Shown: positions 2,716-33,500 of the stretch, piece after piece | Layout: each line of letters begins with the position of its first letter | Position numbering within the stretch: position 1 is the first letter of the stretch | NCBI GenBank assembly: GCA_002269645.1 | Contig: NIVC01000758.1 | Location: 1 to 64,000 of the forward strand | Direction: 5' to 3' | From: Macrostomum lignano | Lineage: Eukaryota | DNA length: 64,000 nt | The notes under the pieces: generated by a model | Database searches by the model: none | Told to the model about the DNA's origin: nothing | What the model saw: only the letters and a program-made list of their open reading frames with translations | Translations under genes and position numbers: made by a program

Positions 2716-3445
2716 TGGTGTCCCCAAAGAAATGAAGAATGCCAAAAATACAACTAAATTCATATATATTTCAATAGAAAAGCTGTGGAACAACTGAAAT
2801 ATCGGAATAAAACATAAAACATGTAATTTTCATTGAAAAAAACGGATAGGAAATATTTAATCGATGACTCAGGTCGATGAAGAGATTACTCTTAGGTGCC
2901 AATAACGCAGCGCCTGTATGTAGTGCTCTGCAGGCTTGTAATCCAGGTAGTAAAAATTTACGGACTGCACAGATGCATGGATGCGTAGTGCACAGCGCAA
3001 AACTTTTGTTCAAGCGCAAATGTATTGTCTTGGATAGATGCATTTTGAGCAGAGAAAAGCCTATCAAAATGTCTAGAAACTTATTAATAATAATATCATC
3101 GCTAGTATAATTTATAACCCGGGAGACTAAGTTTTTCGATAGGGATAACATTGAACTCACGGCATTTAGATAAGGCAAGTTTTTAAAACTTTGACAATTC
3201 GATTGAAGCATAGTCAAGACATGTCAGACAGATTGCTCTATTCACACATCTCAAAATTAACGTCGCATAATATCAGCTTATTGACTTTCATTCCAGCAAA
3301 AAACACGCAACAGGCATGAACGCGGAATGTTTGCAGTGTGACATTCACACGAAAATGTTAATGGTAACTTCATCATTTAGAGTTATAACAGTTTAGTGGA
3401 AATAGTCGTTCACGGAAGCGGCAGTCTCGTGGGTATTGCGTTCGC

Positions 3446-12600: not shown

Positions 12601-13580
12601 GCCCAGTGCAGTGTGCCGGTGATGTCCAGCAGCGGCGGCACCTCGTGCTCGGCGGCGTGCAACTCGCGCTTCGTGCTGCAGCGGGCGTCGACGCTGTCGC
12701 GGAACCAGTTCTCCAGGCGGTGCTCCTCCTCGTGACCGGTGATGGCGGAGGCTCGGCGAACTGTCTGCTGCTGAAGCTGGCCTTGGAATCTGAGCAGCGG
12801 CACGTCCGACCAGTCTGTAGGGAGGGGGGGGGGTTGCGGAGAGCGGCTGGTGCGTCTCGATGACTTCTTCAGTATTGTCCTCTGAATATTGTCCTCTAGC
12901 CTATCATGGGTGCAGGAATAGAATGGATTGCTAATCTAGCCTATCATGGGTGCAGGAATAGAATGGATTGCTAATCTAGCCTATCATGGGTGCAGGAATA
13001 GAATGGATTGCTAATCTAGCCTATCATGGGTGCAGGAATAGAATGGATTGCTAATCTAGCCTATCATGGGTGCAGGAATAGAATGGATTGCTAATCTAGC
13101 CTATCATGGGTGCAGGAATAGAATGGATTGCTAATCTAGCCTATCATGGGTGCAGGAATAGAATGGATTGCTAATCTAGCCTATCATGGGTACAGGAATA
13201 GAATGGATTGCTAGTCCAGCTCGTGAATGAAGGAGCAGATTGAGGAGCTCGACTGTCTCCGTAGCAACTCACCCACATCGCCCGTGAGGTCAAAGCCAAC
13301 TCCTGCCGTGACGGATTCGTCGCCGGTGTGGCTGGTGCTGCGGGTCAGTGAGTGCAAGGGGCGGTGGGTATTCAGCATGGGGTGGAAAAAGTGGGCGAGA
13401 ACAGCAGCAGCTGCTGGCTGCCCGCCCACTCACTCCGTGTCTTCCAGCTCCGCCCTGTACGACAGCTCCGGGTCGGGAATTGTGCTCTGGTCATCGGTGA
13501 GGGTGTCCAGCACCGCCACGAAGTCTTCTTTGAGACCACCGCCGCTGCTGCCGCCTCCTCCTGCACCGCCGCCCCCGCCC

Positions 13581-13612
<32 letters not shown>

Positions 13613-16600
13613 CCCGCGGCCGGCTTCCACGCCTTCGTAGCCTCTGCTGCTGCTGATATCTGGTTAAAGGGTGGGTGAATTTCGGTGGCCGAATACTGGG
13701 TGAATTTTGGTGACTTTGGTGAATGGTAGATGAATACTATGTGAATGCTGTGTGAATGCTGTGTGAATGCTGTTTGAATGCTGTGTGAATGCTGTGTGAA
13801 TGCTGTGTGAATGCTGTGTGAATGCTGTGTGAATGCTGTGTGAATGCTGTGTGAATGCTGTGTGAATGCTGTGTGAATGCTGTGAGAATGCTGGGTGAAT
13901 CCAGGGTGTAGCACTCACTGTGCACCAAAACGCCACTGAAGTCATTCGCCGTGCCGGCCGCAAACCTCCGGACGGACTCAGTGTCGCGGCTCATTAGGAA
14001 GGCCTTCATGGTGCTGGGGTTGATGACGAATCCGGGGTCAAAGGCGGGGTTGATGACCCCGGTCAGCACGCCCGTCAGCTTGTCCACCATGCAGACGCCC
14101 ATCAGCAGGATGCTGTATGTCTGAGGAGCGGGGGTGCTGTGTTTTTATTGCTGCTGTCGGGAACAGGGCCGACCTCGAGAGCAGCAAGCGGTTTACCTGG
14201 TAGGCCTCCAGCGCGAGCTTCTTGAAGCTGCGGTCCCGGTGCTTCGCCGTGAAGCCGACGCAGTAGATTTTCACCTGGATGCCAGCGCTGTAGGCGGTGC
14301 GCCAGCTGGTGCTCTTGGACCCGAGCCGCCTCCCGGCGCCTGAGTAGTCCACGAGGTCACCCGAGGCGGCGCCGCCCCCGCTGTCACCGGCGTTGCCGCT
14401 GGAAGCTGCATTGAGTTCGTCTTCTTCTGAGCTCTGGGACTCGCGATAGCTGAGCAGGTTGATGAGCAGAGTGGCCAGTCCGGGTGCCACCGAGTTGATG
14501 CCCATGAGGCCCAGCAGCACCTGGTTGTCGCACAGAACCGCATCTGGTGGCAGCGAGCCCGGCTTGCCCTGCTTGGTGCGCCACAGCGGCAGCGCACGGA
14601 ACGATTGCTGAGGGGGGCAGTTGGTCAGGCAATGAGCTGAGGACATTGCTGTGTGTGCATGGCAGTGAGCTGCGGACATTGCTGTGTGTGCATGACAGTG
14701 AGCTGCGGACATTGCTGTGTGTGCATGACAGTGAGCCGCGGACATTGCTGAGGGATTGCGGTTGGGTCATGCTCTTGATCTGCACAATGACTCACTTTGT
14801 GAAACATGCCCTTGATCTGCACAATGACTCACTTTGTGAAACATGCTCTTGATCTGCACAATGACTCACTTTGTGAAACATGCTCTTGATCTGCACAATG
14901 ACTCACTTTGTGAAACATGCTCTTGATCTGCACAATGGTGCGGCACTGGGGGGAGCAGAGCTTCAGGCCGATGGTGCGCACATAGTTGATGCGGTCGGCT
15001 TCAAAGTCCGAGTGAGCGCTGCCAGCCTCCGAGGTGAGGATGATGGCTTCGGCGGAGTTCAGCTTGCAGCCCTGGATCAGGAACTCTGCGTCGCTAGGGC
15101 TGCCGAACACCACCGTGATGCGACCGCAGAATGAGCGCAGGAACCACATGATCTGCTCGGAGACCTGGTTGCTGAGGTGTGGGAAGCGGGTGGTTGTTGA
15201 GATGTAGGAGGCGGTTGGTTGCTAGGGGTATTAGTTGCTGAATGCTCAAAGCCGATCGCAACAGTACCAATTCACAGCGCCTTAAAGAAACAAAGTCATG
15301 AACTTCTCTCTCACCTTTGCAGAAAGCAGACCCTGATAATTCCGTCAGTTGACAGAGAAATATTGTGGTAGAAGTTCCAGAAGAAGGACTTGAGCTTGTT
15401 CAGCTGAGAGGAGCCGCAGTAGATGATGTGCCTGGAGTCAAAGTGGGAATATTCTCAAGTACTGTGACAATCGGTTGAAAAATCAGGTCGCTAACAGGCA
15501 CCGCTCACCCCTCGCTGGCTCCCGTGTAAAATGACCGATTGCCGAAGTTTTGCGGCACCGAGCACACGGCGTAGATGTCCGGGATGATTGACGCGAAAAA
15601 TGTCTGCGAACGGGCAATGGATGAAACTAGTTTGTGTGGCTTTACGAGATGCTACTTTGACCTGCACTGCTGTGGTGCTGTGTTGTGGGGGCGGTGCTGT
15701 TGGGCTGTGCTGTGGGGGCGGTGCTGTTGGGCTGTGTTGTGGGCTGTGTTGTGGGGGCGGTGCTGTGGGGCTGTGTTGTGGGCTGTGCTGTGGGGGCGGT
15801 GCTGTTGGGCTGTGCTATGGGGGCGGTGCTGTTGGGCTGTGTTGTGGGCTGTGTTGTGGGGGCGGTGCTGTTGGGCTGTGTTGTGGGGGCGGTGCTGTTG
15901 GGCTGTTCTGTGGGGGCGGTGCTGTTGGGCTGTGTTGTGGGGGCTGTGCTGTTGGGCTGTGTTGTGGGGCTGTGCTGTGGGGCTGTGTTGTGGGGCTGTG
16001 TTGTGGGCGCTGTGCTGTGGGGCTATGTTGTGGGGGCGGTGGTGTTGGGCTGTGTTGTGGGCTGTGTTGTGGGGGCGGTGCTGTTGGGCTGTGTTGTGGG
16101 GGCGGTGCTGTTGGGCTGTGTTGTGGGGGCGGTGCTGTTGGGCTGTGTTGTGGGGGCGGTGCTGTTGGGCTGTGTTGTGGGGGCGGTGCTGTTGGGCTGT
16201 GCTGTGGGGGCGGTGCTGTTGGGCTGTGTTGTGGGCTGTGTTGTGAGGGCGGTGCTGTGGGGCTGTGCTGTGGGGGCTGTGCTGTGGGGCTGTGCTGTGG
16301 GCTGTGCTGTGGTGCTGTGCTGTGGGGCTGTGGTGTGGGTTGTGCTGGAGGCAGGTGGCTTCTGTTAAACTTACCACAGCGAGAGCGACAAAGAAGATGA
16401 GCACCCCTTTGGTGTAATTGTTGCTGGGGGTGATGTCACCGAAGCCCACGCTGCTGGCCGTGACCAGCAGGAAGTACAGGCTGGTGAAGAAGCTCATGCC
16501 GCCAATGTGACCCTCGGGGCTCTCCGGGCAGAATTTCCAGCCATCCAATTTGAAGCCGGTCATGTTTTCCGTCTGAAATTCAATTGCGATCGGAAACTTT

Positions 16601-19045
16601 GAGTGCGGACAGACAGGCGATGCGCTCCTGCGGCCCGGAGATTGCGGGTTTGGAATCCAGTCTGATTAGTTGGACTGGCAGGCAGGGTGGTGTGGGCTGG
16701 CAGGTGTGGGCTGGCAGGTGTGGGCTGGCAGGTGTGGGCTGGCAGGTGTGGGCTGGCAGGTGTGGGCTGGCAGGTGTGGGCTGGCAGGTGTGGGCTGGCA
16801 GGTGTGGGCTGGCAGGTGTGGGCTGGCAGGTGTGGGCTGGCAGGTGTGGGCTGGCAGGTGTGGGCTGGCAGGTGTGGGCTGGCAGGTGTGGGCTGGCAGG
16901 TGTGGGCTGGCAGGTGTGGGCTGGCAGGTGTGGGCTGGCAGGTGTGGGCTGGCAGGTGTGGGCTGGCAGGTGTGGGCTGGCAGGTGTGGGCTGGCAGGTG
17001 TGGGCTGGCAGGTGTGGGCTAGCAGGTGTGGGCTGGCAGGTGTGGGCTGGCAGGTGTGGGCTGGCAGGTGTGGGCTGGCAGGTGTGGGTCCCAGCTATAT
17101 CGGCAGGTCAGCTTCCCACCTGGTAGACGATCCCGGCGAAGACGAACCAGAAGCAGATGATGTTGATGGTGATGTTGACCAGCGTCTTCATCTGTGAGCG
17201 GCGCACGATCCCAACAACGAACAGCAGGTCTTTGAGGCAGTTGAGGCGCAACGCTCGGAGGAAGCTGAACACTGCGGAGTGGGTCGGAGGGGGGGGGCAA
17301 AATGGACGTCGGCGTGCGGACAGCATGGCAAGAGGGCAGCAGGTCAAGCACTCACTGAGCTGCTTCTGCTCTCCCACGATGGCGGCGAGAGCGGGCCCGA
17401 TGGTCAGCACCTCCATCCACGTGCTGGAGCTCACGATAAAACTCCTCTTGTCATTCGTGCCGATGAACTGTTGAATTTTATTGGAATGCACTGATTGTCT
17501 GCAGTTCTTGCCTCTACCCTCCTCTCCTCTCATCTCCTCTCATCTCATCTCATCTCATCTCATCTCATCTCATCTCATCTCATCTCATCTCATCTCCTCC
17601 TCTCTCATCTCCTCTCATCTCATCTCATCTCATCTCATCTCATCTCATCTCATCTCATCTCATCTCATCTCATCTCATCTCATCTCATCTCATCTCATCT
17701 CATCTCATCTCATCTCATCTCATCTCATCTCATCTCCTCTCCTCTCCTCTCCTCTACTCACCCCTCTTCTGCTTTGCCCTCTCATCCTACTCTCTTCTAC
17801 TCTTCTTAAGAGTGTTTCAGACAGGCCTCACCCTAATGATGAAGAAGATAACAAAGTAAATGTTTAGTCCCAAGTCTATGTACACCAAGATGTCGTCCAC
17901 TTGATTTTTCTTGAACACAACCTGTCTCGGGTGCCTGCAATGTATTGTTTGAAATAATGCTGTAAAGTTACTAAAGAAAAGGACTTGAGGTGAGTAAAAA
18001 TGTCATTTTGACGAGTCACTGGTTTGCGCCTGACAGCTCAGCAACTGCTGCCCGCCCTCACATCACAGTGTGCGCTACAAAGAAGCCGAATGACGCAAGG
18101 CTGAAGAAACTCCACAAGGCGCTCTGAAATTTTGCAAGGAAAGTATATTTAGCACCCACTCGGTACAGATTACCCAGCATCAGCTCACCGAGGCACTCAG
18201 CATCAGCTCACCCTAATGAGCACCCTAATGATACATTCAGCATCAACTCACACAGACACTCAGCATCAACTCACGCAGACACTCAGCATCAGCTCACACA
18301 GACACTCAGCATCAGCTCATCCAGACACTCAGCATCAGCTCATCCAGACACTCAGCATCAGCTCACGCAGACACTCAGCATCAGCTCAACGATGCACTCA
18401 ACATCAGCTCACGCAGACACTCAGCATCAGCTCACACAGACACTCAGCATCAGCTCACACAGACACTCAGCATCAGCTCACGCAGACACTCAGCATCAGC
18501 TCACACAGACACTCAGCATCAGCTCACCGATGCACTCAGCATCAGCTCACGCAGACACTCAGCATCAGCTCACGCAGACACTCAGCATCAGCTCACACAG
18601 ACACTCAGCATCAGCTCACACAGACACTCAGCATTAGCTCACACAGACACTCAGCATCAGCTCACACAGACACTCAGCATCAGCTCATCCAGACACAAAG
18701 TTCCAGACAATCCTGGATTCTGGACCTCACCATCGCTTTGCCCCACATCGCCCAGTTGTTGGTGGCGATCTCGCACAGGTCGCGGATCTGCAGGAACACG
18801 GGAAACCGGACCAGCTGCCGGCGGAAGAAGTTGGTGGAGCAGAGGAGGTTGACGCTGAAGATGAGCACCAGGAGGCCCGCGGTGCCGCAGATGCCAATGG
18901 CCTCCTTCATGAGATGAAGGCAGCTGAGGGAAGCAATGAGAAGTTTTTGCACCCCGTCAGTTTGAATATAAAAACTCGCAACTGCCTTCATGATTACCCA
19001 GAACAGGAATGGCTTCAGCCGGGACTTACAGAGTTTTATCGTCAT
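9493..19045 (-). CDS. slo: Slo/BK (KCNMA1/slowpoke-like) large-conductance K+ channel alpha subunit, divergent, 16 exons, about 1235 aa
   Basis: Exons 18731-19045, 18062-18123, 17832-17934, 17356-17467, 17120-17271, 16375-16572, 15509-15603, 15315-15431, 14907-15171, 14197-14607, 13919-14120, 13434-13659, 13273-13337, 11805-12814, 10167-10340 and 9493-9693 are all GT-AG with consistent phases (3708 nt total). Motifs: S0-like helix, S4 FLRALRL, pore TASSVGFGD, S6 FFASIIPDI, RCK1 RHIIYCG and GLATLLINLLSYR, RCK2 DITGTLHW, LVLPLR and LCTENLR, C-terminal MCLGVYRRR...DRIFCF. The start Met is uncertain (19045 or a downstream Met). Confidence 0.93.
9814..10132. repeat. 20-bp minisatellite in the last Slo intron
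   Basis: Unit ATTGCCTACCACAAATCTAC/AA, about 16 copies. Confidence 0.93.
10341..11743. repeat. 33-bp minisatellite (about 42 copies) with higher-order repeat, filling a Slo intron
   Basis: Unit TGCAAACCGGAAGTGATTCAAGCTACCCTATAC. A diagnostic 34-bp variant (GGAAATGGTTCAAGCTTACC) recurs at about 10649, 11013 and 11311 (spacings 364 and 298 bp). Confidence 0.96.
12895..13213. repeat. 40-bp minisatellite, 8 copies (Slo intron)
   Basis: Unit CTAGCCTATCATGGGTGCAGGAATAGAATGGATTGCTAAT. Confidence 0.95.
13738..13900. repeat. 12-bp tandem repeat (Slo intron)
   Basis: (GTGAATGCTGTG)n. Confidence 0.92.
14632..14750. repeat. 33-bp tandem repeat near a Slo acceptor
   Basis: GGACATTGCTGTGTGTGCATG(G/A)CAGTGAGCTGC, about 3.5 copies. 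Confidence 0.88.
14768..14937. repeat. 37-bp tandem duplication of a Slo exon end plus 5' splice site
   Basis: Minus-strand unit CATTGTGCAGATCAAGAGCATGTTTCACAAA|GTGAGT; donors at 14906, 14869, 14832 and 14795. Confidence 0.93.
15665..16345. repeat. G/T-rich approx. 27-bp minisatellite (Slo intron)
   Basis: GGGGGCGGTGCTGTTGGGCTGTGTTGT with deletion variants. Confidence 0.92.
16690..17087. repeat. 14-bp minisatellite, about 28 copies (Slo intron)
   Basis: (TGTGGGCTGGCAGG)n. Confidence 0.95.
17510..17755. repeat. (TCTCA)n pentanucleotide microsatellite (Slo intron)
   Basis: Long CTCAT run with CTCCT edges. Confidence 0.95.
18172..18695. repeat. 23-bp minisatellite (first Slo intron)
   Basis: (CAGCATCAGCTCACACAGACACT)n. 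Confidence 0.93.
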
Positions 19046-19267: not shown

Positions 19268-19585
<318 letters not shown>

Positions 19586-20119
19586 TGTTATGTCCTCTTC
19601 TTCTGCTTCTATACCGACTATTGCCTCCAGGCTACCATCTGACATCAAAGTCAAGTCGAAGAAGCATTATTTAAAATACGAGCTGTTCACAAGCTTTATT
19701 TGCCTCTAGCCGGCGCACGTCTTGCTTGCCCTTTGTAATACTGTTAGCCTTCTGAAAAACCTACGCCCTAAAATTTTCTCCAGAAAGGAGATTTCCCGTC
19801 CTTCTACTTTGAGTAGCCCTTGCTTAGAGCATGCTCACCTTCCAATAGATGCATAGGAAGCATTGAACCAATAAGGAAGGCGGGCAAGGGACTCATGTTA
19901 CAAATGTACTTTCCGGAGCTGTCATGTATATAAATAAAGTTTCATTTTATAGTACGCAAAAGCGGCACTATCCGCATATATACATGGCGTTTTTGTGTGC
20001 AACATTGCCACGGATTTCCCGCGGAAATTCCGTCTATTTTCAACTTAAAGCTCTGCGCGCTGCAAAGCAAAGCAAAACTTCTACTGCATCAGACCCAGTT
20101 TTTTAGATTCGCCTTTAAA

Positions 20120-20770
20120 ATGCCGGAAATCTACCAGCGCTGGAACGGGTCCAAGGACAAAGGAAACCTGGAATTTTGGCGAAGCGAGGAGTTCCGCAAC
20201 GAATACGCAAGATTTGAGATGGTCAAGAAGAAAGAAATCGTGTACAGCCTCATCAGGAAGGAGATGCATGCCGCCATAATGTCCTCTGACAGGACCAGCT
20301 ACCGGGTGCTGTCGCTGGGCTGCGGTCCCGGCTCCGACTTGCTGGCGGCCATGCAGGTCTTCCAGTCCGTGTGCGTCAAGGAGGAATTGGAGCCCCTGAC
20401 CGTCAAGGTCACGGGAGTTGACCGCTATGACTGGTCGCTGGACAGCTTCAGCGCTAAGACAGAGGCCATCGAAAGGCGGGGACCGATCGAGAACTTCCGA
20501 GATAAATTTTACTTCTGCAGCATGCAGCGGTATTTTGAATTCGCTCGCAGAAGTGGAAAGCGATTTGACTTCATCATTTTGAGCTTCGCTGAAGTGAAGA
20601 AGAAGCTGGAATTCGTCTCCAACCGCCTGCCTGAGCTGCTCCGAGATGAAGCCAGCAGGATCTTCGTGATCGACAACAACATCGAGCCCGTGAGACAGCT
20701 GAAACGCTGCGGATTCGAACAGATTGGAACTTTGGCCGGAAGGACAATCTGTTTGATAGGCCAGCAATGA
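20120..20770 (+). CDS. Intronless class I SAM-dependent methyltransferase-like protein, paralogue 1 (216 aa)
   Basis: ATG at 20120 (MPEIYQRWNGSKDKGNL). SAM motif I VLSLGCGPGSDL, beta-2 acidic VTGVD, FDFIILSFAEVK. Collinear with two other copies in the window. Confidence 0.85.
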   Translation: MPEIYQRWNGSKDKGNLEFWRSEEFRNEYARFEMVKKKEIVYSLIRKEMHAAIMSSDRTSYRVLSLGCGPGSDLLAAMQVFQSVCVKEELEPLTVKVTGVDRYDWSLDSFSAKTEAIERRGPIENFRDKFYFCSMQRYFEFARRSGKRFDFIILSFAEVKKKLEFVSNRLPELLRDEASRIFVIDNNIEPVRQLKRCGFEQIGTLAGRTICLIGQQ

Positions 20771-21320
20771 TCGAGCTGGCTGAGGTGAGGGACACCGCGA
20801 TCGGAGGCGTCGCAGTTAGCGTTGTTAATCTGCAAGCGGCTTATTTTGTTTTGAAGTTACTATTTTGTATTATAGGCAGGTGGCTATATGCGACATTGTC
20901 ACATTGCTGCCCATTCCGCCGGCTCCCCTAAACAGGCACACAAGCGCAAGGATACGTACGCAATCATTCGCAAGCGGTCCCAACTTTATCGTTTGGCATA
21001 TAACACTTTAGGGTTGGCCCTCAATAGCGTCAATTGCACGAGCAGAGCCAAGATGCGATTCCAGTTTAGTCGCAAATGAATGTGACTGCACTGGGAATCG
21101 AGCCTGGGCCGCTGGCTTTAGGGAGGCTGCGGTCCCTGTTTTGAAGTTAGTACACAGTTTGTGAGGGCAGAGTTCTGAAGCCTTTTTCTGCGAAGCGAAT
21201 TTTCTAACTCGTGAAGCTTCATTTATGTGAAATTGGTTGCTAAAGCTTTTTCTTGGTTTGTGAAATTTTTACGACCGGCTTGTGAAGCTCCCCTCTATTT
21301 TTAGCCACAGCTGCTCTAAA

Positions 21321-21468
21321 GGCTCGTTCACACCGCCATCAAATAAAACCAAATTTCGTGTGATCACAAAACTTGTACACCAAATTTGGTTCCTTTGTAC
21401 CTTGTTCGTGTAACTCTCAATAACACACAAAGCTTTGGCGGCTAATTTGAAGGCAGTGTGAATGAGGC
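21321..21468. mobile_element. Possible short MITE remnant
   Basis: Imperfect terminal inverted repeats GGCTCGTTCACACCGCC ... GGCAGTGTGAATGAGGC; no clear TSD. Confidence 0.3.
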
Positions 21469-22077
21469 TTCAGCCCCTGCAGATCTCAGCAAATTGGGGG
21501 AAGGAATATCTAGTTGGTTCCATGTTGGTTGATTCTCGGAACTTGCAAAAACTGAAAAGCTGTTCTATTTTTAGTACCACTGCACGGTCTGTGAGGCAAG
21601 AATCGATACCACCAGTATAGCGCTGGCCAGCTTTGTCAGCCAGCCAGTCAAGCAAAGTAAAAATATCAGTACAGTTGCGCTACTAACGGCTCACGTACTG
21701 ACTCAGTTCATTCTCAGATTCATGACTTGAAAACGTGATACGAGCCGTACTGAATTTCAAAGCTTCAAGATTGGCTGGGCGGTCTACGCTCAGAATTATT
21801 CTGATTACCGATAACATAATCCCTTAAATATACTTCCATGTAACGTCTGCATTGCAACACTTATTTGCTGGACTGACTGCATTCAAGACTCTTCTTGGAA
21901 TGATTCGTTCGACGAAGTATTTATACGTAGCCAGAAATTTTATACATAACGAAATGAGGGGGGGTAATCATGACGCCTTATGACTTCATCAGTGTTCGCC
22001 ATCGATAATGAAAATCTTAATTACCGTTGATGGCAACAGCATTAGTGTCAAAATAAAAATTCTTTTGAGCAATGTGG

Positions 22078-22790
22078 AGTTTAGGCCTCATGGTCTCGTG
22101 AAGTTTAGGTCTCACGATGTTTAGGTCTCACGATGTTTAGGTCTCATGAAGTTTAGGTCTCATGAAGTTTAGGTCTCATGAAGTTTAGGTCTCACGATGT
22201 TTAGGTCTCATGAAGTTTAGGTCTCATGAAGTTTAGGTCTCATGAAGTTTAGGTCTCATGAAGTTTAGGTCTCATGAAGTTTAGGTCTCACGATGTTTAG
22301 GTCTCATGAAGTTTAGGTCTCATGAAGTTTAGGTCTCACGATGTTTAGGTCTCATGAAGTTTAGGTCTCATGAAGTTTAGGTCTCATGAAGTTTAGGTCT
22401 CATGAAGTTTAGGTCTCATGAAGTTTAGGTCTCATGAAGTTTAGGTCTCATGACGTTTAGGTCTCATGAAGTTTAGGTCTCATGAAGTTTAGGTCTCATG
22501 AAGTTTAGGTCTCATGAAGTTTAGGTCTCATGAAGTTTAGGTCTCATGAAGTTAGGTCTCATGAAGTTTAGGTCTCATGAAGTTTAGGTCTCATGAAGTT
22601 TAGGTCTCATGAAGTTTAGGTCTCATGAAGTTTAGGTCTCATGAAGTTTCGGTCTCATGAAGTTTAGGTCTCATGAAGTTTAGGTCTCATGAAGTTTAGG
22701 TCGCATGAAGTTTAGGTCTCATAAAGTAGTTAAGTCTTATGAAGTTTGGGTCTCTTGAAGTTTAGGTCTTGTGAAGTTAGGTCTTAGTTA
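22078..22790. repeat. 16-bp minisatellite, about 44 copies
   Basis: (GTTTAGGTCTCATGAA)n with a CACGAT variant. Confidence 0.95.
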
Positions 22791-23319
22791 GGATTTGCGG
22801 CTATGAGCTTTTGTAAGCTCGCGTTACTGCTCACATGGTCATTTTGGATAAACTTTTCTTCACACAATGCTGCATGTTTCTATTTAGTCTCACCTTGGCT
22901 CAATGCACACAGCACGAACTATCGGCTCAAGCCAGCTTTACTACTCAACCTCACACAACTGTCTAATTTAAAACAAACACATTTAACTTCACGACAAAGA
23001 CTGCTATCAGCATAGGCAACCTGTTTATATCTTGATTCAAGAAAAACTTCGGGAATGCCGATCTGATTGAGAAGCCAGGCTGCTGTTGGGGGAAGTTGAC
23101 TACAGAATCAAAAGACACAGACAGCCTTTGGACTCTTGGAGACTGCCATGGACTTACAGAAAGCCTCTTCTGTGATTGCCTGACAGGTCCTGGTAGAATC
23201 GCCCCGGAGATTCATTTTGAGATTTATGGGTTGTTGCCAATGAAAAAACTAGCTTTAAAAGATAAATTGAAAACATAACTGGCCTGGGAGTCGATGAGGG
23301 GGGTGTTTGTGAGAAGCCG

Positions 23320-23788
23320 TGTGGGAGTGTGGAAAGTTGCATGGGAAACAGTGTGGGAAGCCATATGAGAAGCAATGTGGGAAGCAGTCTGGAAGCAGTC
23401 TGGAAGCAGTCTGGAAGCAGTCTGGAAGCAGTCTGGAAGCAGTCTGGAAGCAGTCTGGAAGCAGTCTGGAAGCAGTCTGGAAGCAGTCTGGAAGCAGTCT
23501 GGAAGCAGTCTGGAAGCAGTCTGGAAGCAGTCTGGAAGCAGTCTGGAAGCAGTCTGGAAGCAGTCTCAATTTGGAAGTAGTCTGGAAGCAATTTGGAAGC
23601 AGCCTGGAAGCAGTCTGGAAGCAGTCTGAAAGTAGCTGAAGCAGTCTGGAAGCAGTCTGGAAGCAGTCTGAAAGCAATTTGGAAGCAGTCTAGAAGCAAT
23701 CTGGAAGCAGTCTAGAAGCAGTTTGAAAGCAGTCTGGAAGCAATCTGGAAGCAGTCTGAAAGCAATTTGGAAGCAGTCTGGAAGCAGT
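23320..23788. repeat. 11-bp tandem repeat
   Basis: (GGAAGCAGTCT)n with degenerate flanks. Confidence 0.94.
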
Positions 23789-24247
23789 GCGGGAACGACT
23801 CTGCATATCTGTAGAAATTAAGAAAGTAGTTGCGAATTCCTCTTTTGCTACTCGTAAACTGCATACCGAAAGCCAATTACGAGCTCACAGTTAAAATAAT
23901 AAAAAGCACAAGTACTCAGTAATCGAGTAATTCCAGGTAAAAATTCCGGCTCAAACAGGCGTAGCACTTTCAAAATCTGATTCTGTTTTATAATTATCAA
24001 ATTGTGAAACCATTTACTTTAATTAATCAAGAGACCGCCATGGTAATTTTTTCTTAGATTTTTTAGTCTAAGAATATTTGCTATTTGCTTTGCTTACAAA
24101 TCATGTGACACATTAATGTTTTCCTGTTTGAATAATTTGCACATAAAGTTCCTGCACGCGAGTGAATCGCTGGTATACTAGAATTACTGGATGGGCCACT
24201 CAAGCTAGCACATATACTGATATACATGTACTTAGTAAAACAGCTTT

Positions 24248-24578
24248 CTACTTTCAGTTCAGTAGCAATGAAGAATGCACAAGCTATTTTATAAAAATAA
24301 AGGCAGCTGAAATGACTTTGATAAGTTTAGAAGCCAAGCTTGCAGACGTAAACAGCTTGCTAATTGGTCCAGCCATAATGTACATTGGCCACTGAAATGT
24401 ACAAGGCAGATTTAGGCTGAAACAACCGAGGAAGGTAATAAAAGTTGGCGGCTGGGCAGGAGTAGAGGTTCTGTGTGGTGTTTGAGGGTTTAAGCTTGGG
24501 GAGGGGGGGTTAGAACCACCTTGTCTTTAAAAATACATTAAAATGCTTTAGTCTAACTTACTACTGAACTGAAAGTAG
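24248..24578. mobile_element. Possible MITE with 18-bp perfect TIRs
   Basis: CTACTTTCAGTTCAGTAG (24248-24265) and its exact reverse complement (24561-24578); no clear TSD. Confidence 0.35.
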
Positions 24579-25290
24579 CTTGCACGCAAATGTGCTGAGT
24601 AGCCCATCTAGTTATTCTAGTGTCTGTGGTGCGCCATGGATGAAGGAATAACATTCCGCAGCGCGCAGTCAGAAGCGATCGATAAATTTGGGATGGTGGG
24701 GGAAGAAATGAGGTTGCTTGCTTCACTTAAACGGCGGCAGGGTCAGCAGGAATGTACATTATAAACGGCGGCAGGGTCAGCAGGAATGTACATTATACTA
24801 CATAGATAGCCTGCATGGGGTGGTTGACTTGCGAGGGGACGAGAAACAACTTTGGGGGTGGAGTAGCGGGTGTACATTGACTTCAGTCTATCGCACACTG
24901 CGAACTTATCTCCTAAGACCCCCAAGTGCTTATCCCAAGTGTTTATATGTTCGATCTGCCTGCAACTGCAAGTACTTTTATTTATTTAGCAATCACAATA
25001 ACAAACTTTGAAAAACGTTATTGCTTTTTTGACTCATCATTATGGTTAACCCAAAATAATGTAAGTAAAATTTAGTCTTGACTTGATAAAAAATGACTAC
25101 AGTAGTTAAGCACCATCTATGCACGCTAATGTGCTTTAGACTGGCACGGACCGCCTGACTGTGACCCTGCCTTCAATGGAAAATTCTGGATCCGCCAAAC
25201 ATACTCGATCAACATTAAAAGACAATGAATGAAGTTCGTTAACTAATTCTCACTGTACTTAATCAGATGAAGCTCCAGTATTGAACAGCT

Positions 25291-25947
25291 CTAGTAAGAC
25301 AGAAACAAAGCGTTGGTTCTGGCTCTGCAGTTGACTAAGCAGAAGCCAAACTGCTCAAGCTGCCGCACCTGCCAGATGTTGTTGTCGATGACGAATATGC
25401 GGCTGTACTCGTCTCGAAGCAGCCGGGGCAGCAGCTGCCCAACCAGACCGATTCTGCGCTTTACCTCGGCGAAGGTCAGGATGATCAGGTCAAAGCTGGC
25501 GCCGGCGTCCATACTGTAATCTACGAAGTCCTCCATGCTGCAGTTGAAGTGGAACTTCTCCGGAAAGAACCTGATCGGCCCCTGCGCCACTAGAGCCGAG
25601 CGCTGAGCCCTGTACTCGTACAGCGGCCAGGGGTACAGGTCCACTCCCGTCACCTCGACGTTGAGCTTCCAGTTGTTCACTTGGCAGTTGGTCTGGAAGA
25701 CGTCCATGACAGCGAGGAGGTCGCTGCCGGGCCCACAGCCCAGAGACAGGACTCGGTAGTTTGTCTGGCTAGTGCTATTAATTACATTAGTCAATTCTTC
25801 TTTGACGAAGCACCGCACTAGTGCTCTGTTCTTTATAAGCTGACAGGCGGTATACTCCTTCCGGAACTGACGGCTGTGAAAGTAGGCCAGGTTTCCCTTA
25901 TCCTTGGACTGGTACCAATGAGTATAGCTGTCGTAGACGCTGGCCAT
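25291..25947 (-). CDS. Intronless class I SAM-dependent methyltransferase-like protein, paralogue 2 (218 aa)
   Basis: MASVYDSYTHWYQSKDKGNL...YRVLSLGCGPGSDLL...VTGVD...FDLIILTFAEVK...SRIFVIDNNI; intact ORF. Confidence 0.85.
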   Translation of the reverse strand: MASVYDSYTHWYQSKDKGNLAYFHSRQFRKEYTACQLIKNRALVRCFVKEELTNVINSTSQTNYRVLSLGCGPGSDLLAVMDVFQTNCQVNNWKLNVEVTGVDLYPWPLYEYRAQRSALVAQGPIRFFPEKFHFNCSMEDFVDYSMDAGASFDLIILTFAEVKRRIGLVGQLLPRLLRDEYSRIFVIDNNIWQVRQLEQFGFCLVNCRARTNALFLSY

Positions 25948-26369
25948 TGCTTAGAAAATTGCTGTTACAAGTTGTGGTATTGGATGGATAGCCTATAACT
26001 CTCCCTACAAGGGATGGCCTCTTTTAACTACGAGAGGGATGAGTGCAAGTACAAAGTCAATTGAATTGGAATGTACAGTGCGCTCATTTTGCAATATCAT
26101 CTGTACTTACTGCATTCCAGTGATAAAAAAGTACACACATTTGACACTGCACTTGCACGTATGGCATCAGAAGCAGCCCTCCCAATATTAATTACTAATA
26201 CACTAATTACTCAGCACTCCTCTTCCCGCCTGCAGGGTTGTGTTAGCCATAAAATGCATTGAATTAATTGAATAAATTATCACGTTATGGGCAATGGGAG
26301 TTATGGGAGCGTGGCATGGGTATATTTTAAGAGTTAAGGTATGCATACGATATATAGCGTACTGTGGGG

Positions 26370-26900
26370 AGGAAGCAGGGTGTTATGGGGAGGAAGCAGG
26401 GTGTTACGGAAGAGAGTAGAGTGTTATAGAAGAGAGCAGGGTGTTATGGAAGAGAGCAGGGTGTTACGGAAGAGAGCAGAGTGTTATAGAAGAGAGCAGG
26501 GTGTTACGGAAGAGAGCAGGGTGTTACGGAAGAGAGCAGGGTGTTACGGAAGAGAGCAGGGTGTTATGGAAGAAAGCAGGGTGTTACGGAAGAGAGCAGG
26601 GTGTTACGGAAGAGAGCAGGGTGTTATGGAAGAGAGCAGGGTGTTATAGAAGAGAGCAGGGTGTTACGGAAGAGAGCAGGGTGTTACGGAAGAGAGCAGG
26701 GTGTTACGGAAGAGAGCAGGGTGTTATGGAAGAAAGCAGGGTGTTACGGAAGAGAGCAGGGTGGTACGGAAGAGAGCAGGGTTTTATGGAAGAGAGCAGG
26801 GTTTTATGGAAGAGAGCAGGGTGGTACGGAAGAGAGCAGGGTGTTACGGAAGAGAGCAGGGTGTTACGGAAGAGAGCAGGGTGTTACGGAAGGGAGCAGA
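26370..26900. repeat. 20-bp minisatellite, about 26 copies
   Basis: (GAAGAGAGCAGGGTGTTACG)n. Confidence 0.95.
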
Positions 26901-27603
26901 GTGGGGAAAGGAGCAGCCCTTGGGCGACAAGTGTTCTGCAAGAATAATTTATACAAGCTATTGTATAATTTTATACATGCATATAATACAAACAATATTT
27001 AGTTGCACTTATCAGAGTTGTACAAATCTATTATATCAGTTTTCATCTGATACTGTTACACTGAGAACCTGACGCAGTTGATTTCAACTTTTACAATGCA
27101 ACCAAACCCACGTATACGAGTCCTGCTGCCGTGGCTGCTGTCGCAGGACGCTGGCACTCGAAAATCGTGCGAAGTTCACAGGAGGCCGGTTCCAGTTGTC
27201 CGCGGTAAGAATCGAAATAAAAATACGCAAAACTGTCGCACTTTTAGTTTTCTTGTGAAACAACTGACGATACGAAAATAATCTAAAAATATTCACGGAG
27301 TCTGTGATGGTCAGAGTGGTTGTGAGCGAGCTCGAGTTAATAACACGAGCGTATGGGTCTGCACCCTGACGCCAGTAAATACAGTTGGGTGCTCGGAAAA
27401 ATGTCTTTTTCTGCGGACTGAGTTCACTCAGACTGAGTGGGACCACTGATGCGATTTTAGAAGCTTCTGAGTGAGTACTGCAGTATTCCATGTGCTTTCT
27501 ATTTGTGCAATGCGCAGTCTGGCCAGCCTAGGAGCTTTTTATTCGTGCTTTGTTTCTTCGGTTAACTGCTATTCTAAGCGCACGCAAGGACAGCTTAAGT
27601 AGA

Positions 27604-27906
27604 AGGACGCGACACTCGAAATCTATGGTAAATGTTTTGAAGGCAACTTTTCGCCGAAAAATACACTACAGAGATAGGAGGTTTTAATATCGATATTCAT
27701 AAAGCTTTTCGTTCAGAAATAGTTTTAAAGGCAGGTTTTGCCGGAAAAAATACACTACGGAGATAGGAAATTTCACGATTTTCAACACTAAAACAGTGAT
27801 TGGGTCTCTTAACAGTGTCTGATTAAGTACCTCCTATCTCTGTAGTGTATTTTCGGCGAAAAGTTGCCTTCAAAACATTTACCATAAATTTCGAGTGTAG
27901 CATCCT
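27604..27906. mobile_element. MITE/foldback element with approx. 79-bp terminal inverted repeats
   Basis: 27604-27682 is the reverse complement of 27829-27906 with about 3 mismatches and 1 indel. An internal partial copy (AAAATACACTACGGAGATAGGA) lies at about 27747. No coding capacity. Confidence 0.75.
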
Positions 27907-28100
27907 ATATACCTAAGGTATATGTTACTTGAGAAGTCCTTGAGCGCATATTGCTTGAATTATGGGAACCATACTTTACCCAGACCCCTGGCTCTGAGAG
28001 GAATGCAAGGAACTACTGACCAGTTTCCTCTCCTGGTCTCCAGCCGAGACAGGCAATTGTTTTAGCAAGAATTTCGGAGTGTCGCTTTCATAATTCTGAA

Positions 28101-28223
28101 ATTTCATAACGCCGAAAATTCTGCATGGTCCTTCACAAGACTGAAACTTCATCAGACCGAAAGTTCACATCATAGAAAACTTGATATAACACAGACCATG
28201 CCGAATTTTCGGCGTTGTGAAAT
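28101..28223. repeat. 30-bp inverted repeat (foldback)
   Basis: ATTTCATAACGCCGAAAATTCTGCATGGTC (28101-28130) pairs at 28/30 positions with 28194-28223. Confidence 0.7.
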
Positions 28224-28944
28224 CATTTTATAATTATTTTCATTCAAAAAGATTGGAATCTCCAAAGAACTTAGAACTCCATAGAACTAAGTTCTAACCA
28301 CTCTGAAATTCACCATTCTGAGAACGTCTGCGGCTACGTGAGACCTTTTGGACAAAAGTGCAGCCCCGGAAACAAGAAGCATCGATAACAGGCATCCAAG
28401 AGTGGGCAACAGTGATCAGTGACCATTGACAAGCGCAATCACTTATTTGATCACATTTATTTAGATCTCCCTATTGTAGCTATAGGGATTCCAAAATCCC
28501 CAAAGTCCACAATTCACAATCCCGGAATTGGAAGGCCTAGCTGTAGCTCTCATAAAATAAGTCAGACTCGAACTGGAGGAGTCTTGCCAAAGTGGAAACA
28601 AAGCGGACAGGGGTGGAGATGGGACGGGAACACCTGGGGTCGGGACGAGAGGGATACAATTCTGCTGCTCACTCATTGGCTTCCCGAGAACCAATGAGGA
28701 TTTCAGTCCGGGGAATTGCCGCGGAATTCCGTAGAGGCTGCTCGGAGTATTGTCAAAATTCCGTGCACCCAAACTGTACTCGTACGAGAGCTTGCTCAGT
28801 GCTGCGTACAGCGAAGTGTCATCACCAAAAATAGACCACGGGTTTTCCACGGAAATTTTGTTACATCTGATGTTTTATTGGCATCCATCTGCTAAAAGAA
28901 TGATTAAACCTTTCCTCTGCTTCACACTGCTCGTGACATTCAGC

Positions 28945-29686
28945 ATGTCTTATTCCTGCTGGTGCAACTCAAAAGATAAAGGCAATCTGAAATATTACAA
29001 AACCCAGTCATTTCGCAGAGACTACACGGCCCGCGAGTTGCAAAGCAAGAGAATGTTGATCCATGGGTTCATCGAAGATGAGCTTGAGTCCGCCATCATG
29101 TCAACAGACTTGACCAACTACGAGGTCCTTTCGCTGGGCAGCGGCCCCGGCAGCGACGCCTTGGCTGTTTTGGACGTGTTCCGGTCCGTCAGCGAGACAG
29201 AGAGCCTCAGCGATCTTGACGTCAGCGTCACCATGGTTGATCTGTTTCAATGGCCTCTGGAGCCAATTCGTGAGGAATTTTCCGCTATTAGAGATGAGGG
29301 AAGAATCGGCCAACTTTCAGGAATCTATTTACTCTGATAAGAGCATGGAAGACTATGTGGATGACATCTGGAGCTCAGACCAGTTCTTTGACTTCATCAT
29401 CTTGAGCTTCGCTGAAGTGAAGACGAAAACCAACTTCGTAGTTCAGCAGCTGCCGGAGCTGCTGCAGGGCGATGCCAGCAAGATTTTCATCATTGACAAC
29501 GACATTCGGGAGGTGCACCGACTGGAGAGTTGCGGCTTTCGTTGCGTCGCTACTGATGGTGGTGTTCTATGTGTACGACTGAGAGACTTACAGAGGACTG
29601 CCTCTTACTCTACCAGATGCATCTGCGTGAGCTCAAGGCCGACTTATCCATTGTTCATTCGGATTTTCAAGCCCTTTTTTGCGTAA
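28945..29686 (+). pseudogene. Methyltransferase paralogue 3 with a single +1 frameshift (pseudogene or sequence error)
   Basis: MSYSCWCNSKDKGNL...VLSLGSGPGSDAL...VTMVD in one frame. Removing one G at 29308/9 (ATCGGCC) restores IANFQE...SMEDYV...FDFIILSFAEVK...KIFIIDNDI, collinear with the paralogues. Confidence 0.8.
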
Positions 29687-30588: not shown

Positions 30589-33500
30589 TCAGGCCGCAGT
30601 CTCGGCCGGCTGGGCCGCGGTTGCCATGGCAACGGCATCGTCAACGTCCTCGGCCGGCGACTCGATCAGCGCCGGCGGCGATGCGGCGAAGGCGGCCACC
30701 GCGGCGATGGTCGTCGATGCTGGGGAGGCGGTCGAGGCGGACGGCGAAGCGGCGACGGGCGCGGGCGGCAGCAGCGCCACTTGAGAGCCGGCATCGGCAG
30801 CCGCGACTTCGGCCTCGCCGTCGGCGTCAAGCGGAGGCAGAAGCTGCGGCGAGGCCGGCCCTCGGGCCCGCAGCTGCTGCTGCTGCTGGCTGGAGGACAG
30901 TGCGCTGCCCAGCGACTCGAAGCTGCCGCCGACGCCGCCAACGCCTCCACAGCGGCTGCAGCATCGGCCACCTCCACCGCCGCCACCGCCGCCGATGCCT
31001 CGGAGGCTGCCAGCGACGGATGCGGATGCCGAGGCGGAGAGGAGCAGCGAGTTGGCGGGCCGCAGGAACTGGTGGTGCTGATGGTGGTGGTGGTGGTGGT
31101 TGGCAGGCGAGCTGAGGCCTGACGAGCCGGCAACGCCGCCATTGCAGCGGCCGTGGGAGAAGTACTGCAGGCCGTTGGGCCCGGAGTAGACGCAGTAGGG
31201 GCTGTGGTCCGGGATCAGGTCCGGCGGATTGGCGGCAGAGTTCCAATCGGAAGTGTCCCAGTGGTAGCCTGCGGAGACGGTGATGGTGAGGTGACATTGA
31301 GCTCACGGATGCCTGATAGCCACTTTCACCTGGTAAGTTTCCAGTGGGCTCTATTGGCTGGTTAAAGCTGCGACACTTCTAGCTCTCTATTACGCCTGTT
31401 AAAGCTGTTATTCTAGAATTTCTGTGTTAAAATGTCAAACAAGCCTACTACTGGCAGTAGAGTAGCGCAGTTATTATGCAGTAAAAAATAACTAAAAGTA
31501 AAAAATACCGATTAACAAATAATCAGACAGCGAGTTTATAACAAAATAGAAGTTTATGGCATTGTTATCGGTTTTAGCACGGGTGTTAGAGCCACCTCTT
31601 CTCCCAGGCCAGCCAAATTCTCTGCAATTGTCACCTCTGCGGATCCAGCAGCTGCACTGCCAGCCGTGGCCGCACGGAGCCGCCCGGCCGCCTGGCGAGT
31701 TGAGTTGGAAATTCGGTTTTTTGGAAAATCTCGATCTCACAATTACCGCTGTTGCCCATTGTCGGCTTACGTAAGTGGGAAACAAAACAAAAAATGCTAC
31801 CATTTATTGACCGGCCTACTTATAGTAAGACATCCAAGACATTTCCAGGCTTACTTTGGGATGGGGATATCAACTTTGTGCTTAAGTACAACACAAAGAA
31901 CTGGACGGGCTCAGCTGCTCACTCAGAGACTGAGAGGATGGACTCAGCTGCTCACTCAGAGACTGAGAGGATGGACTCAGCTGCTCACTCAGAGACTGAG
32001 AGGATGGACTCAGCTGCTCACTCAGAGACTGAGAGGATGGGCTCAGCTGCTCACTCAGGGACTGAGAGAATGGACTCTGCTGCTCACTCAGGGACAAAGA
32101 GGATGGGCTCAGCTGCTCACTCGGGGACAAAGAGGATGGGCTCAGCTGATAACTCAGGGACAGAGAGGATGGACTCAGCTGATAACTCAGGGACTGAGAG
32201 GATGGACTCAGCTGATAACTCAGGGACTGAGAGGATGGACTCAGCTGATAACTCAGGGACAGAGAGGATGGACTCAGCTGATAACTCAGGGACAGAGAGG
32301 ATGGGCTCAGCTGATAACTCAGGGACAGAGAGGATGGACTCAGCTGCTCACTCAGGGACTGAGAGGATGGGCTCAGCTGATAACTCAGGGACTGAGAGGA
32401 TGGACTCAGCTGATAACTCAGGGACTGAGAGGATGGGCTCAGCTGATAACTCAGGGACTGATAGGATGGGCTCAGCTGATAACTCAAAGACTAGAGGATG
32501 GACTCAGCTGATAACTCAGGGACTGAGAGGATGGACTCAGCTGCTCACTCAGGGACTGAGAGGATGGACTCAGCTGCTCACTCAGGGACTGAGAGGATGG
32601 ACTCAGCTGCTCACTCAGGGACTGAGAAGATGGACTCAGCTGCTCACTCGGGGACTCGTGTAGGGACCTGACACCCCCCTCCCCCCACTGTAGGGGTGTC
32701 AGGTCCCTACAAGAATAAAACAGACGCATCTGGGAGCGCATCTCTAACCGCTAAAGCAGACAGCCATCTAACTAATGCAATAATAACACATTTACAGCGT
32801 CATAATTATGGTTGTAGAAAACTCAATTCTAGACACGGACGAAGAGCACAGTGGGGTAGCGGAGTAGCGCTGAAGAACTTAAACAAATGATTAATCATGG
32901 TTCAGGTGTGCGCAGAGTTTTACTTGTCTGAGCTGGAATTGCTGCGGCGAAGCTGCCAGCCGCTGCAGCCCTGAAATGCGAGCTCAAAATAGCAGCGAAC
33001 GGACAGGTGCGTTACTAATTAGATGACGAGGTGTTCGGCTTGCTAACTGCTATGAAAGTTACTCCCGCCGTTTACCCGCGCAGCTCGGCTCACCTTGCTC
33101 ATCGATTAGAAAGTCGCCCAGGCCGCCGCCGACTTCACCAACTCCCGACGATGCCGGCAGCCGCACCTGGGGAAACCTCGGCGGGTAGCCGCCGCCGCCA
33201 CCGCGGGGGGTCAGGCAGCGGGTGGGGGTCCCGGCGGCGGACTCAGCCACCAGCTGGCTGGGGTAGCGGCCGTTGCCGATGGCGGTGGCCGCTGTTGACG
33301 ACGGAGGCCGCGGCCGCTCGTAGCAGGCGTAGGTCGGGCTGGGTCCCGCCGAGCCCAGAGGCCCCATGCCGACCCCGAGCGACCCCAGCTCCTTCTGCGG
33401 CACCAGGCGGGTCTCCCCGCTGGCCAGGGTGACCAGCGCCACCGCCTCCGACGGGTCGTGCAGCTCGCAGCCGTAGGCGGAGGCCGGCGACCCGTTGCCG

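Follow-up and report, generated by a model that had tools for sequence, protein, structure and literature searches.

A cluster of three short methyltransferase genes in Macrostomum lignano

The DNA analyzed here, which we call the window, is a 64,000-nucleotide stretch of the genome of the flatworm Macrostomum lignano (contig NIVC01000758.1, positions 1 to 64,000), and it carries, between two multi-exon genes, three related short genes that we designate MT1, MT2 and MT3 and that are predicted to encode class I S-adenosylmethionine (SAM)-dependent methyltransferases (Table 1). A first-pass annotation had described three intronless open reading frames (ORFs) on the +, - and + strands. The coordinates and strands of all three were confirmed, and MT1 and MT2 are indeed uninterrupted ORFs; MT3, however, is broken by a one-base frameshift and cannot be counted as a single open frame. 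A tblastn search located exactly three copies of the short gene within the window, and no ATG-initiated ORF of at least 200 amino acids arose in 100 shuffles of window positions 17 to 33 kb. MT1 and MT2 share 50% of their amino acids (BLASTP E value of 2e-68) and MT3 is 46 to 48% identical to either, giving a three-way range of 46 to 50%. This fits the divergence at about half of positions that had been claimed, while the similarity lies far beyond chance. The MT1 and MT2 products are basic, with isoelectric points of 8.9 and 8.4, and that of MT3 is acidic (4.8).

The motifs by which the three genes had been grouped, SKDKGNL near the N terminus, VLSLG(C/S)GPGSD (motif I), VT(G/M)VD and FD(F/L)IIL(S/T)FAEVK, could all be placed at coordinates by motif scans (Table 1). 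The fifth, which corresponds to strand β5, is also present, but its first residue is R or K rather than S or K, and the motif thus reads (R/K)IF(V/I)IDN(N/D)I. Two inverted repeats in the cluster, I1 and I2, proved to be the paralogous coding sequences on opposite strands and nothing more.

The MT3 reading frame is broken by a recent lesion or an assembly indel

The frame in which MT3 begins would, if read on, meet a stop at 29335-29337. At the break the protein reads ...AIRDEGRI, the last codon ending at 29307, and then continues in the next frame as ANFQESIYSDKSMEDYV... (ANFQESIY..., from 29309). Both segments that flank the break align, position by position, with MT1 and MT2, and tblastn shows that MT3 is still open and equally conserved beyond the shift; the lesion is therefore either recent or an indel of the assembly, and MT3 either a recent pseudogene or the carrier of such an indel. 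An intron does not account for the break, since the sequence around it offers no GT..AG intron of length 3n+1. A 51-nt GT..AG candidate (29270-29320) was rejected because its length is 3n, so that the frame is not restored, and because its removal deletes residues that align with the paralogues. The C-terminal tail of MT3 is ~30 residues longer than those of MT1 and MT2 and aligns with an insert between β6 and β7 of the long paralogue described below. An in-frame upstream ATG at 28900 (28900-28944) would prepend to MT3 a hydrophobic, signal peptide-like segment of 15 residues, MIKPFLCFTLLVTFS; MT1 and MT2 lack such an N terminus.

The short genes are old and bear the marks of constrained coding sequence

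Among MT1-3, pairwise nonsynonymous divergence (dN) is 0.45 to 0.55 and synonymous divergence (dS) is at least 1.4, that is, saturated. The resulting dN/dS ratios are at most ~0.33 by the NG86 method and smaller by maximum likelihood, and are thus not near 1. DNA-level similarity between the copies is confined to the coding sequences, and the flanks do not align. The G+C content at third codon positions (GC3) is 0.74 for MT1, 0.76 for MT2 and 0.63 for MT3, ~0.3 above the surrounding DNA. Spacer G+C is 0.42 to 0.44, compared to a GC3 of 0.71 to 0.89 in neighboring host exons. This host-like bias, which is specific to codon position, argues for long-term translation in the M. lignano genome and speaks against a recent foreign origin or contamination. 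Because dN of 0.45 to 0.55 stands against saturated dS and because GC3 is host-like, the genes appear to be real, constrained coding sequences, and MT1 and MT2, judged by their substitutions, have evolved under purifying selection. The earlier proposal that the duplications are old was thus borne out.

A multi-exon paralogue lies just outside the window

A profile built from the three MT proteins gave five matches among 1.84 billion representative proteins. Two of them (P0001 and P0004) were artifacts driven by repeats, of RVLELGCGVGLTG units or of FGAGNGN units, and were discarded. The best real match, P0002 (E value of 2.3e-13), is an M. lignano protein annotated as "Methyltransf_25 domain-containing protein", the cluster of which includes PAA65732.1 (P0006; 726 residues; BOX15_Mlig012580g1) and the UniProt entries A0A267EYB4 and A0A1I8FYA5. 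The locus of P0006 (L001, on contig NIVC01001623.1 of GCA_002269645.1) overlaps window positions 1 to 2146 at 99.6% identity, which places the gene, Mlig012580, ~8 kb outside the window as a fourth member of the family (Table 1). Residues 1 to 65 of P0002 are encoded within the window itself, at 3784-3590, in a gene model into which a neighboring exon has been merged.

Mlig012580 consists of an all-helical N-terminal region of ~390 residues, a methyltransferase domain (residues ~395 to 609) and a tail of ~115 residues. The domain is 27 to 29% identical to MT1-3 and has the same methyltransferase motifs, although it lacks SKDKGNL; moreover, Mlig012580 is annotated and transcript-supported, unlike MT1-3. 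The homology of Mlig012580 to the short genes is confined to the exon that codes for residues 320 to 611 and ends two residues short of the 3' end of that exon. Given this paralogue and the bacterial sister family described below, the short genes can no longer be called orphan-like. We found no paper that names Mlig012580, and the literature that we found on M. lignano methyltransferases concerned DNMT and m6A only.

Several features of this flank were observed alongside. In the UniProt gene models P0002 and P0010, Mlig012580 is erroneously joined to exons of an adjacent membrane-protein gene. This gene, which has neither annotation nor a Pfam match, flanks Mlig012580 on both sides, at window 3449-6628 (- strand) and at L001 22834-25438; its two copies are ~83.5% identical in DNA, which suggests a local segmental duplication around Mlig012580. 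The whole region also exists as a homeologous copy (L084, on contig NIVC01003853.1), which matches window 2986-6029 at 94.6% identity, carries an inserted long terminal repeat (LTR) retrotransposon and extends to the equivalent of window position ~9.5 kb. At window 1457-2715 lies a tandem array of a 53-bp unit, ~1.2 kb long, seen as a ladder of 53-bp offsets in blastn of L001.

The predicted fold is that of class I methyltransferases

The AlphaFold2 (AF2) model of MT1, computed from a four-row alignment, had a mean predicted local distance difference test (pLDDT) score of 86.5 and a predicted template modeling (pTM) score of 0.85. It comprises a long N-terminal helix (residues 23 to 54) followed by a canonical alternating core of seven strands (60-66, 94-100, 125-131, 151-155, 180-185, 200-205 and 209-215) with intervening helices. 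The model of the long form Mlig012580 (pLDDT of 48.8) was too poor for a fold search. Foldseek searches of the PDB and BFVD with the MT1 model returned only SAM-dependent methyltransferases and spermine synthase, with template modeling (TM) scores of ~0.45 to 0.57 and 12 to 16% identity; the BFVD matches were generic viral methyltransferases only. The top PDB matches (Foldseek E values of ~1e-6) were the MnmC/YfcK methyltransferase domain (2qy6, 3vyw, 3ps9), RNA m5C methyltransferases of the SMU.776/PH1915 type and human histamine N-methyltransferase (1jqd); the plantazolicin N-methyltransferase BamL/BpumL (4kwc, 5dm1) is a further solved neighbor. All have the seven-strand Rossmann-like core in common with MT1. 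These enzymes share no substrate-binding motifs with MT1 and have other N-terminal or accessory domains, and the likeness is therefore at the level of the superfamily only. Thus, the predicted fold, which agrees with the class I Rossmann assignment made from motifs alone, shows membership of the superfamily and of no specific family within it.

Sequence comparisons gave the same picture. The residues LGCGPGSD (LGSGPGSD in MT3) and (V/M)VD at the end of β2 are invariant in MT1-3, in the long form and in the bacterial relatives; the GxGPGS loop, the VD ending β2 and a Phe in β4 are the invariant residues across the flatworm and bacterial proteins. MT1-3 do not reach any Pfam threshold. The models Methyltransf_34 (PF11312), Methyltransf_23 (PF13489) and Methyltransf_31 (PF13847) match them weakly from motif I to β4, the best being the first two at 17 to 19 bits (MT1, 18.8 and 18.3; MT2, 16.6 and 17.4; the 5' part of MT3, 17.1) against gathering cutoffs of 26 to 27, and the long form passes PF13489 only, with 28.7 bits against 27. 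Searches of NCBIfam with the MT proteins and of PDB sequences with their profile yielded noise only. No match was found for MT1 by a word-indexed search of 5.8 billion proteins or by tblastn against phage and plasmid collections, and a pattern scan of JGI metagenome contigs gave 600 pattern matches and 0 relatives. MT1-3 also lack the signs of a restriction-modification DNA methyltransferase: neither the (D/N/S)PP(Y/F/W) motif IV nor PC(Q) follows β4, and neither Pfam N6_N4_Mtase nor DNA_methylase matches significantly. The earlier suggestion of an uncharacterized, lineage-restricted family fits these results, the profile search having returned one M. lignano protein and two weak bacterial matches.

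The closest outside relatives are bacterial and are coupled to DUF1848

The two other credible matches, P0003 (E value of 2e-4) and P0005 (E value of 8e-4), are on low-GC prokaryotic contigs, and each of their genes overlaps the start of a DUF1848 (PF08902) gene. Restriction-modification, AAA_15/DUF4435 and HNH genes lie around them. GTDB genomes were scanned with DUF1848 as the query, which gave at least 580 relatives, and 80 loci were kept. A same-strand ORF of at least 120 residues abuts DUF1848 in 56 of the 80, and by iterative hidden Markov model (HMM) searches, 30 of these upstream ORFs constitute one methyltransferase family. Nothing but the methyltransferase and DUF1848 is conserved across those 30 loci; the other neighbors vary and are often defense island-like. 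In nearly all cases the family member lies immediately upstream of DUF1848, commonly with an overlap of 4 nt, and in one locus the two are fused into a single protein (L024:3101-4924). The cassette is widespread (bacterial loci L002-L083), occurring in anaerobic Bacillota, in Bacteroidota, in Desulfobacterota and in others.

The bacterial members have (I/V)LS(I/L)GCGPxxD, GxD-x2-W after β2, xILS(Y/F) in β4 and I(I/F)xxD(x)N in β5 in common with the flatworm proteins. They differ in size and at the N terminus, being ~280 to 450 residues long with an N-terminal CxxC...CxxC, whereas the short flatworm proteins have 216 to 246 residues and a W-x2-SKDKGNL lid. They differ also in setting, as the flatworm genes lie in eukaryotic context, with one member inside a 726-residue multi-exon protein, and the bacterial genes are partnered with DUF1848. 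An HMM built from bacterial sequences only scored the Mlig012580 domain at 53 bits, MT2 at 42, MT1 at 32 and MT3 at 25, in each case above any Pfam methyltransferase model on MT1-3 (at most 19 bits). Alignment of the flatworm with the bacterial alignment by hhalign gave a probability of 98.4% (E value of 4e-15) over 154 columns, beginning at the helix that precedes motif I and ending at the IDN/IND loop after β5, and 97.9% with the long form alone. Like the flatworm proteins, most bacterial members fall below every specific Pfam family threshold, and 5 of the 30 match Methyltransf_31. The best solved relative of the bacterial profile is the plantazolicin (peptide) N-methyltransferase BamL/BpumL, at 30 bits. 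From these profile comparisons, the flatworm family is probably a peripheral member or a sister of the bacterial DUF1848-linked methyltransferase family.

DUF1848 itself carries C-x3-C-x2-C (CQHGCKYCYA) at its C-terminal end, a spacing that we take to be that of the radical-SAM cluster motif. A single PADLOC model, C3a159 "methyl transferase", which derives from a survey of type III CRISPR accessory genes, is the top match of P0003, of the long form and of both MT1 and MT2. It is also the catalogued profile closest to the bacterial family, and PADLOC names the bacterial DUF1848 proteins "RTasDUF1848", a DRT accessory. In the literature that we found, DUF1848 occurs solely as an accessory of the UG25 (DRT) system (PMC9226505). 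The function of the methyltransferase and DUF1848 pair appears to be undescribed.

Genomic context, repeats and candidate signals

The neighbors of the cluster are, as had been noted, rich in introns, their Pfam matches being spread over separate ORF pieces (Table 1). The sole database protein of the right neighbor is P0011, a UniRef-only entry. Base composition varies strongly along the window, with 58 to 70% G+C in the neighboring genes (GC3 up to 0.89) and 38 to 50% in the MT cluster and at the window's left end. Tandem arrays fill the DNA between the MT genes and give rise to long spurious ORFs there, and the MT2-MT3 spacer also contains two hairpin-forming inverted repeats that look like miniature inverted-repeat transposable elements (27604-27906, with 57-nt arms at 95%, and 28101-28223, with 30-nt arms at 93%).

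Palindromic sites resembling TTCC-N2-GGAA(A/T)TT are found 100 to 230 nt upstream of MT1 and MT3 (Table 1), with none upstream of MT2 or elsewhere in the window. Three such sites compare with 0.31 expected, a count that is circular, the pattern having been derived from these same sequences; they are possibly a shared promoter element. A pyrimidine-rich stretch that ends in AG 1 to 14 nt before the ATG precedes each gene (20092-20119, TTTTTTAG; 25948-25960, TTTTCTAAG; 28930-28944, ACATTCAG). As 39% of M. lignano genes are trans-spliced (PMC5730564), these stretches could be candidate spliced-leader acceptors, although AG dinucleotides are common.

Table 1. Positions of the short methyltransferase genes, their motifs, the long paralogue and other features. 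Coordinates refer to the window, except for Mlig012580.
Feature	Position	Strand	Remarks
MT1	20120-20770	+	Intact 216-aa ORF, stop included in coordinates; predicted class I SAM methyltransferase
MT1 N-terminal SKDKGNL	20150-20170	+	Motif scan
MT1 motif I VLSLGCGPGSD	20306-20338	+	Motif scan
MT1 VTGVD	20408-20422	+	Motif scan
MT1 FDFIILSFAEVK	20564-20599	+	Motif scan
MT1 RIFVIDNNI	20657-20683	+	Motif scan
MT2	25291-25947	-	Intact 218-aa ORF, stop included in coordinates; 50% identical to MT1
MT2 motif I	25720-25752	-	Motif scan
MT2 VTGVD	25639-25653	-	Motif scan
MT2 FDLIILTFAEVK	25459-25494	-	Motif scan
MT2 RIFVIDNNI	25375-25401	-	Motif scan
MT3, whole	28945-29686	+	Homologous throughout; split over two frames
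MT3 5' part, frame a, residues 1-121	28945-29307	+	Lies in ORF 28750-29337
MT3 SKDKGNL	28969-28989	+	Motif scan
MT3 motif I VLSLGSGPGSD	29125-29157	+	Motif scan
MT3 VTMVD	29227-29241	+	Motif scan
MT3 +1 frameshift, approximate	29308	+	One extra base within ~29296-29315, in atcGgccaac
MT3 3' part, frame a+1	29309-29686	+	Lies in ORF 29216-29686; stop at 29684-29686
MT3 FDFIILSFAEVK	29387-29422	+	Motif scan, frame a+1
MT3 KIFIIDNDI	29480-29506	+	Motif scan, frame a+1
Mlig012580, fourth family member	L001 10001-15438	-	~12 exons, 726 aa; ~7.9 kb left of window position 1, ~28 kb from MT1
Left neighbor, multi-exon Slo-like K+ channel	11781-19045	-	Pfam RCK, BK_channel_a and pore matches on separate ORF pieces
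Slo-like channel, putative first coding exon	18680-19045	-	Divergent from MT1, ~1.1 kb away
Right neighbor, multi-exon cadherin-EGF gene	33062-62139 or beyond	-	Pfam matches on separate ORF pieces; GC-rich, GC3 0.72-0.87
Non-LTR retrotransposon (long interspersed nuclear element, LINE)	57696-61021	+	Long open APE-endonuclease and reverse transcriptase (RT) ORFs; inside cadherin-EGF span, opposite strand
(CTCAT)n array	17519-17755
23-mer array	18233-18696
(TGTC)79 array	19269-19585
16-mer x43 array	22092-22784
11-mer array	23380-23788
20-mer x26 array	26374-26903
33-mer x23 array	31903-32656
Palindromic site	20017-20031	.	~100 nt upstream of MT1 ATG
Palindromic sites	28712-28726, 28845-28859	.	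Upstream of MT3

Origin of the family

Taken together, the data are best read as a tandem cluster of three old paralogues that encode small (~25 kDa), single-domain class I SAM methyltransferases restricted to Macrostomum and possibly of ancient bacterial origin, a reading to which we assign a probability of roughly 0.7. In keeping with it, no metazoan orthologue, and indeed no relative of any kind from a eukaryote other than M. lignano, was found at E <= 1e-3 among the 1.84 billion representatives. Several observations weigh against this reading. The proteomes of flatworms and other under-sampled eukaryotes are sparse in the protein libraries searched. The link to bacteria is distant, at only ~17 to 20% identity and with flatworm HMM scores at or below the bottom of the bacterial family's leave-one-out range of 46 to 297 bits; neither MT1-3 nor the long form, over the part that was aligned, has the CxxC...CxxC segment, and tblastn with two DUF1848 queries found no DUF1848 homologue (E < 2) in the 64-kb window or in the 25 kb of L001. 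The MT3 frame is broken, no gene call contains a protein identical to MT1, MT2 or truncated MT3, and the products of all three are absent from a collection of 15 billion proteins. As to function, the structural neighbors are mixed, ranging from the tRNA MnmC domain and rRNA m5C-type enzymes to histamine N-methyltransferase and spermine synthase, and the standing of the peptide enzyme BamL as best solved relative of the bacterial profile weakens any inference about the substrate.

The absence from gene calls bears directly on whether MT1-3 might be decaying, unexpressed relics left when the methyltransferase exon of Mlig012580 was partially duplicated, the long gene alone being functional. Such an account would be served by the MT3 frameshift and by the lower GC3 of that gene (0.63), by the lack of a canonical AATAAA or ATTAAA in the 500 nt downstream of MT1, and by the fact that MT1-3 appear in neither the transcript-based GenBank annotation nor any protein collection. 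The annotation of GCA_002269645.1, however, drops transcripts that overlap repeats (PMC5730564), and since the locus is full of tandem arrays, absence from it is weak evidence only. Relics of such age would be full of stops, and yet the MT1 and MT2 frames of 216 and 218 codons are open despite dS of at least 1.4, with dN/dS of at most ~0.33, all SAM-binding motifs kept and GC3 ~0.3 above the surrounding DNA, and MT3 is open and conserved beyond its shift. We thus regard the relic account as unlikely. Still less probable is that the genes were retroposed, as had been proposed, that is, that they are LINE-mediated cDNA copies of the long gene. They are intronless, compared with ~12 exons in Mlig012580, and a LINE with endonuclease and RT ORFs does lie within the window. 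But retroposition is not needed to explain the lack of introns, since the homologous region of Mlig012580 lies in a single exon; the homology covers part of that exon and stops at its 3' end, with no match to the upstream exons or to the final exon (residues 612 to 726). A cDNA copy should include the downstream exon, which the short genes lack, and retroposition is therefore disfavored. In addition, the three copies are clustered beside the parent rather than dispersed, and neither a poly(A) remnant nor target-site duplications were seen within 500 nt downstream and the flanks show no similarity, although at dS > 1 such marks would be eroded anyway. The short genes would have arisen most simply by DNA-level duplication of the exon-sized Mlig012580 unit, or, in the alternative direction, Mlig012580 would have formed by fusion of a stand-alone methyltransferase unit with other exons.

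With regard to the deeper origin, the family may descend from an ancient transfer from a bacterium to a flatworm, the genes then gaining introns, adapting their codon usage and duplicating. Such a transfer is plausible because all outside relatives in a very large library proved to be bacterial and to come from a mobile-looking two-gene cassette, and we rate it, from sequence comparison, at slightly better than an even chance; the first-pass suggestion of horizontal acquisition is to that extent favored, although the support for it is not decisive. The competing explanation is an ancient eukaryotic methyltransferase that was inherited vertically and diverged fast in Macrostomum, its bacterial likeness reflecting the common ancestry of a subclade. 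The 17 to 20% identity to bacterial members, the flatworm scores, which are no higher than the low end of the bacterial range, the host-like codon usage, the spliceosomal introns of the long form and the subthreshold matches to the eukaryotic Pfam family Methyltransf_34 would all sit well with vertical descent. Against it, the search of 1.84 billion representatives, eukaryotic proteomes among them, gave no eukaryotic relative outside M. lignano at E <= 1e-3, and the sole outside matches are bacterial and have a specific gene context in common, so that we view vertical descent as possible but rather doubtful. Contamination or misassembly that placed foreign bacterial ORFs between flatworm genes can be set aside as exceedingly improbable: the closest outside relatives are bacterial, but the ORFs lie on one contig between metazoan multi-exon genes and eukaryotic satellites, exist as three diverged copies alongside an intron-containing, transcript-supported paralogue, have host-like GC3 and are less than 25% identical to any bacterial protein. 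A more elaborate scenario, in which an ancestor of Macrostomum captured the methyltransferase half of a defense island-type bacterial cassette (methyltransferase plus DUF1848), which was domesticated (gaining introns and, in one copy, a eukaryotic N-terminal domain) and expanded into a local family of four genes whose present role is to modify nucleic acids, for instance in defense of the genome or against transposons, or in RNA regulation in the stem cells or germline of a flatworm rich in repeats and highly capable of regeneration, is speculative and would, in our estimate, probably not hold in full.

Proposed mechanism and substrate

In the reading of MT1-3 as small stand-alone methyltransferases, SAM would be held by the GxGPGS loop after β1 and by Asp101 at the end of β2, and the substrate site would be formed by the conserved IILSF-AEVK (β4) and IDN(N/D) (β5) loops together with the N-terminal helical W-x2-SKDKGNL lid. 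The enzyme would then move the methyl group from SAM to an acceptor. Our best guess for that acceptor, held with low confidence, is a nucleic acid base or a nucleotide-like substrate, a slight tilt that stems from the linkage of the bacterial relatives with DUF1848, from their defense-type neighborhoods and from the basic isoelectric points of MT1 and MT2. The main alternative is an amine on a small molecule or a peptide, and the BamL- and histamine N-methyltransferase-type neighbors are compatible with such N-methylation.

Implications

What is described here is a divergent family of class I methyltransferases, a known kind of system rather than a new one. Should the short genes be silent, the locus would amount to no more than an ordinary cluster of lineage-specific duplicates. 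If they are expressed, they would constitute an unstudied animal methyltransferase family without orthologues in model organisms, and since M. lignano is a transgenic regeneration model, tests by RNA interference, in situ hybridization and transgenesis are readily feasible. The bacterial link, in turn, makes the family a candidate for gene transfer from a bacterium to an animal, and it gives reason to ask what the methyltransferase and DUF1848 pair, catalogued only as an accessory of UG25/DRT reverse transcriptases, does in bacteria.

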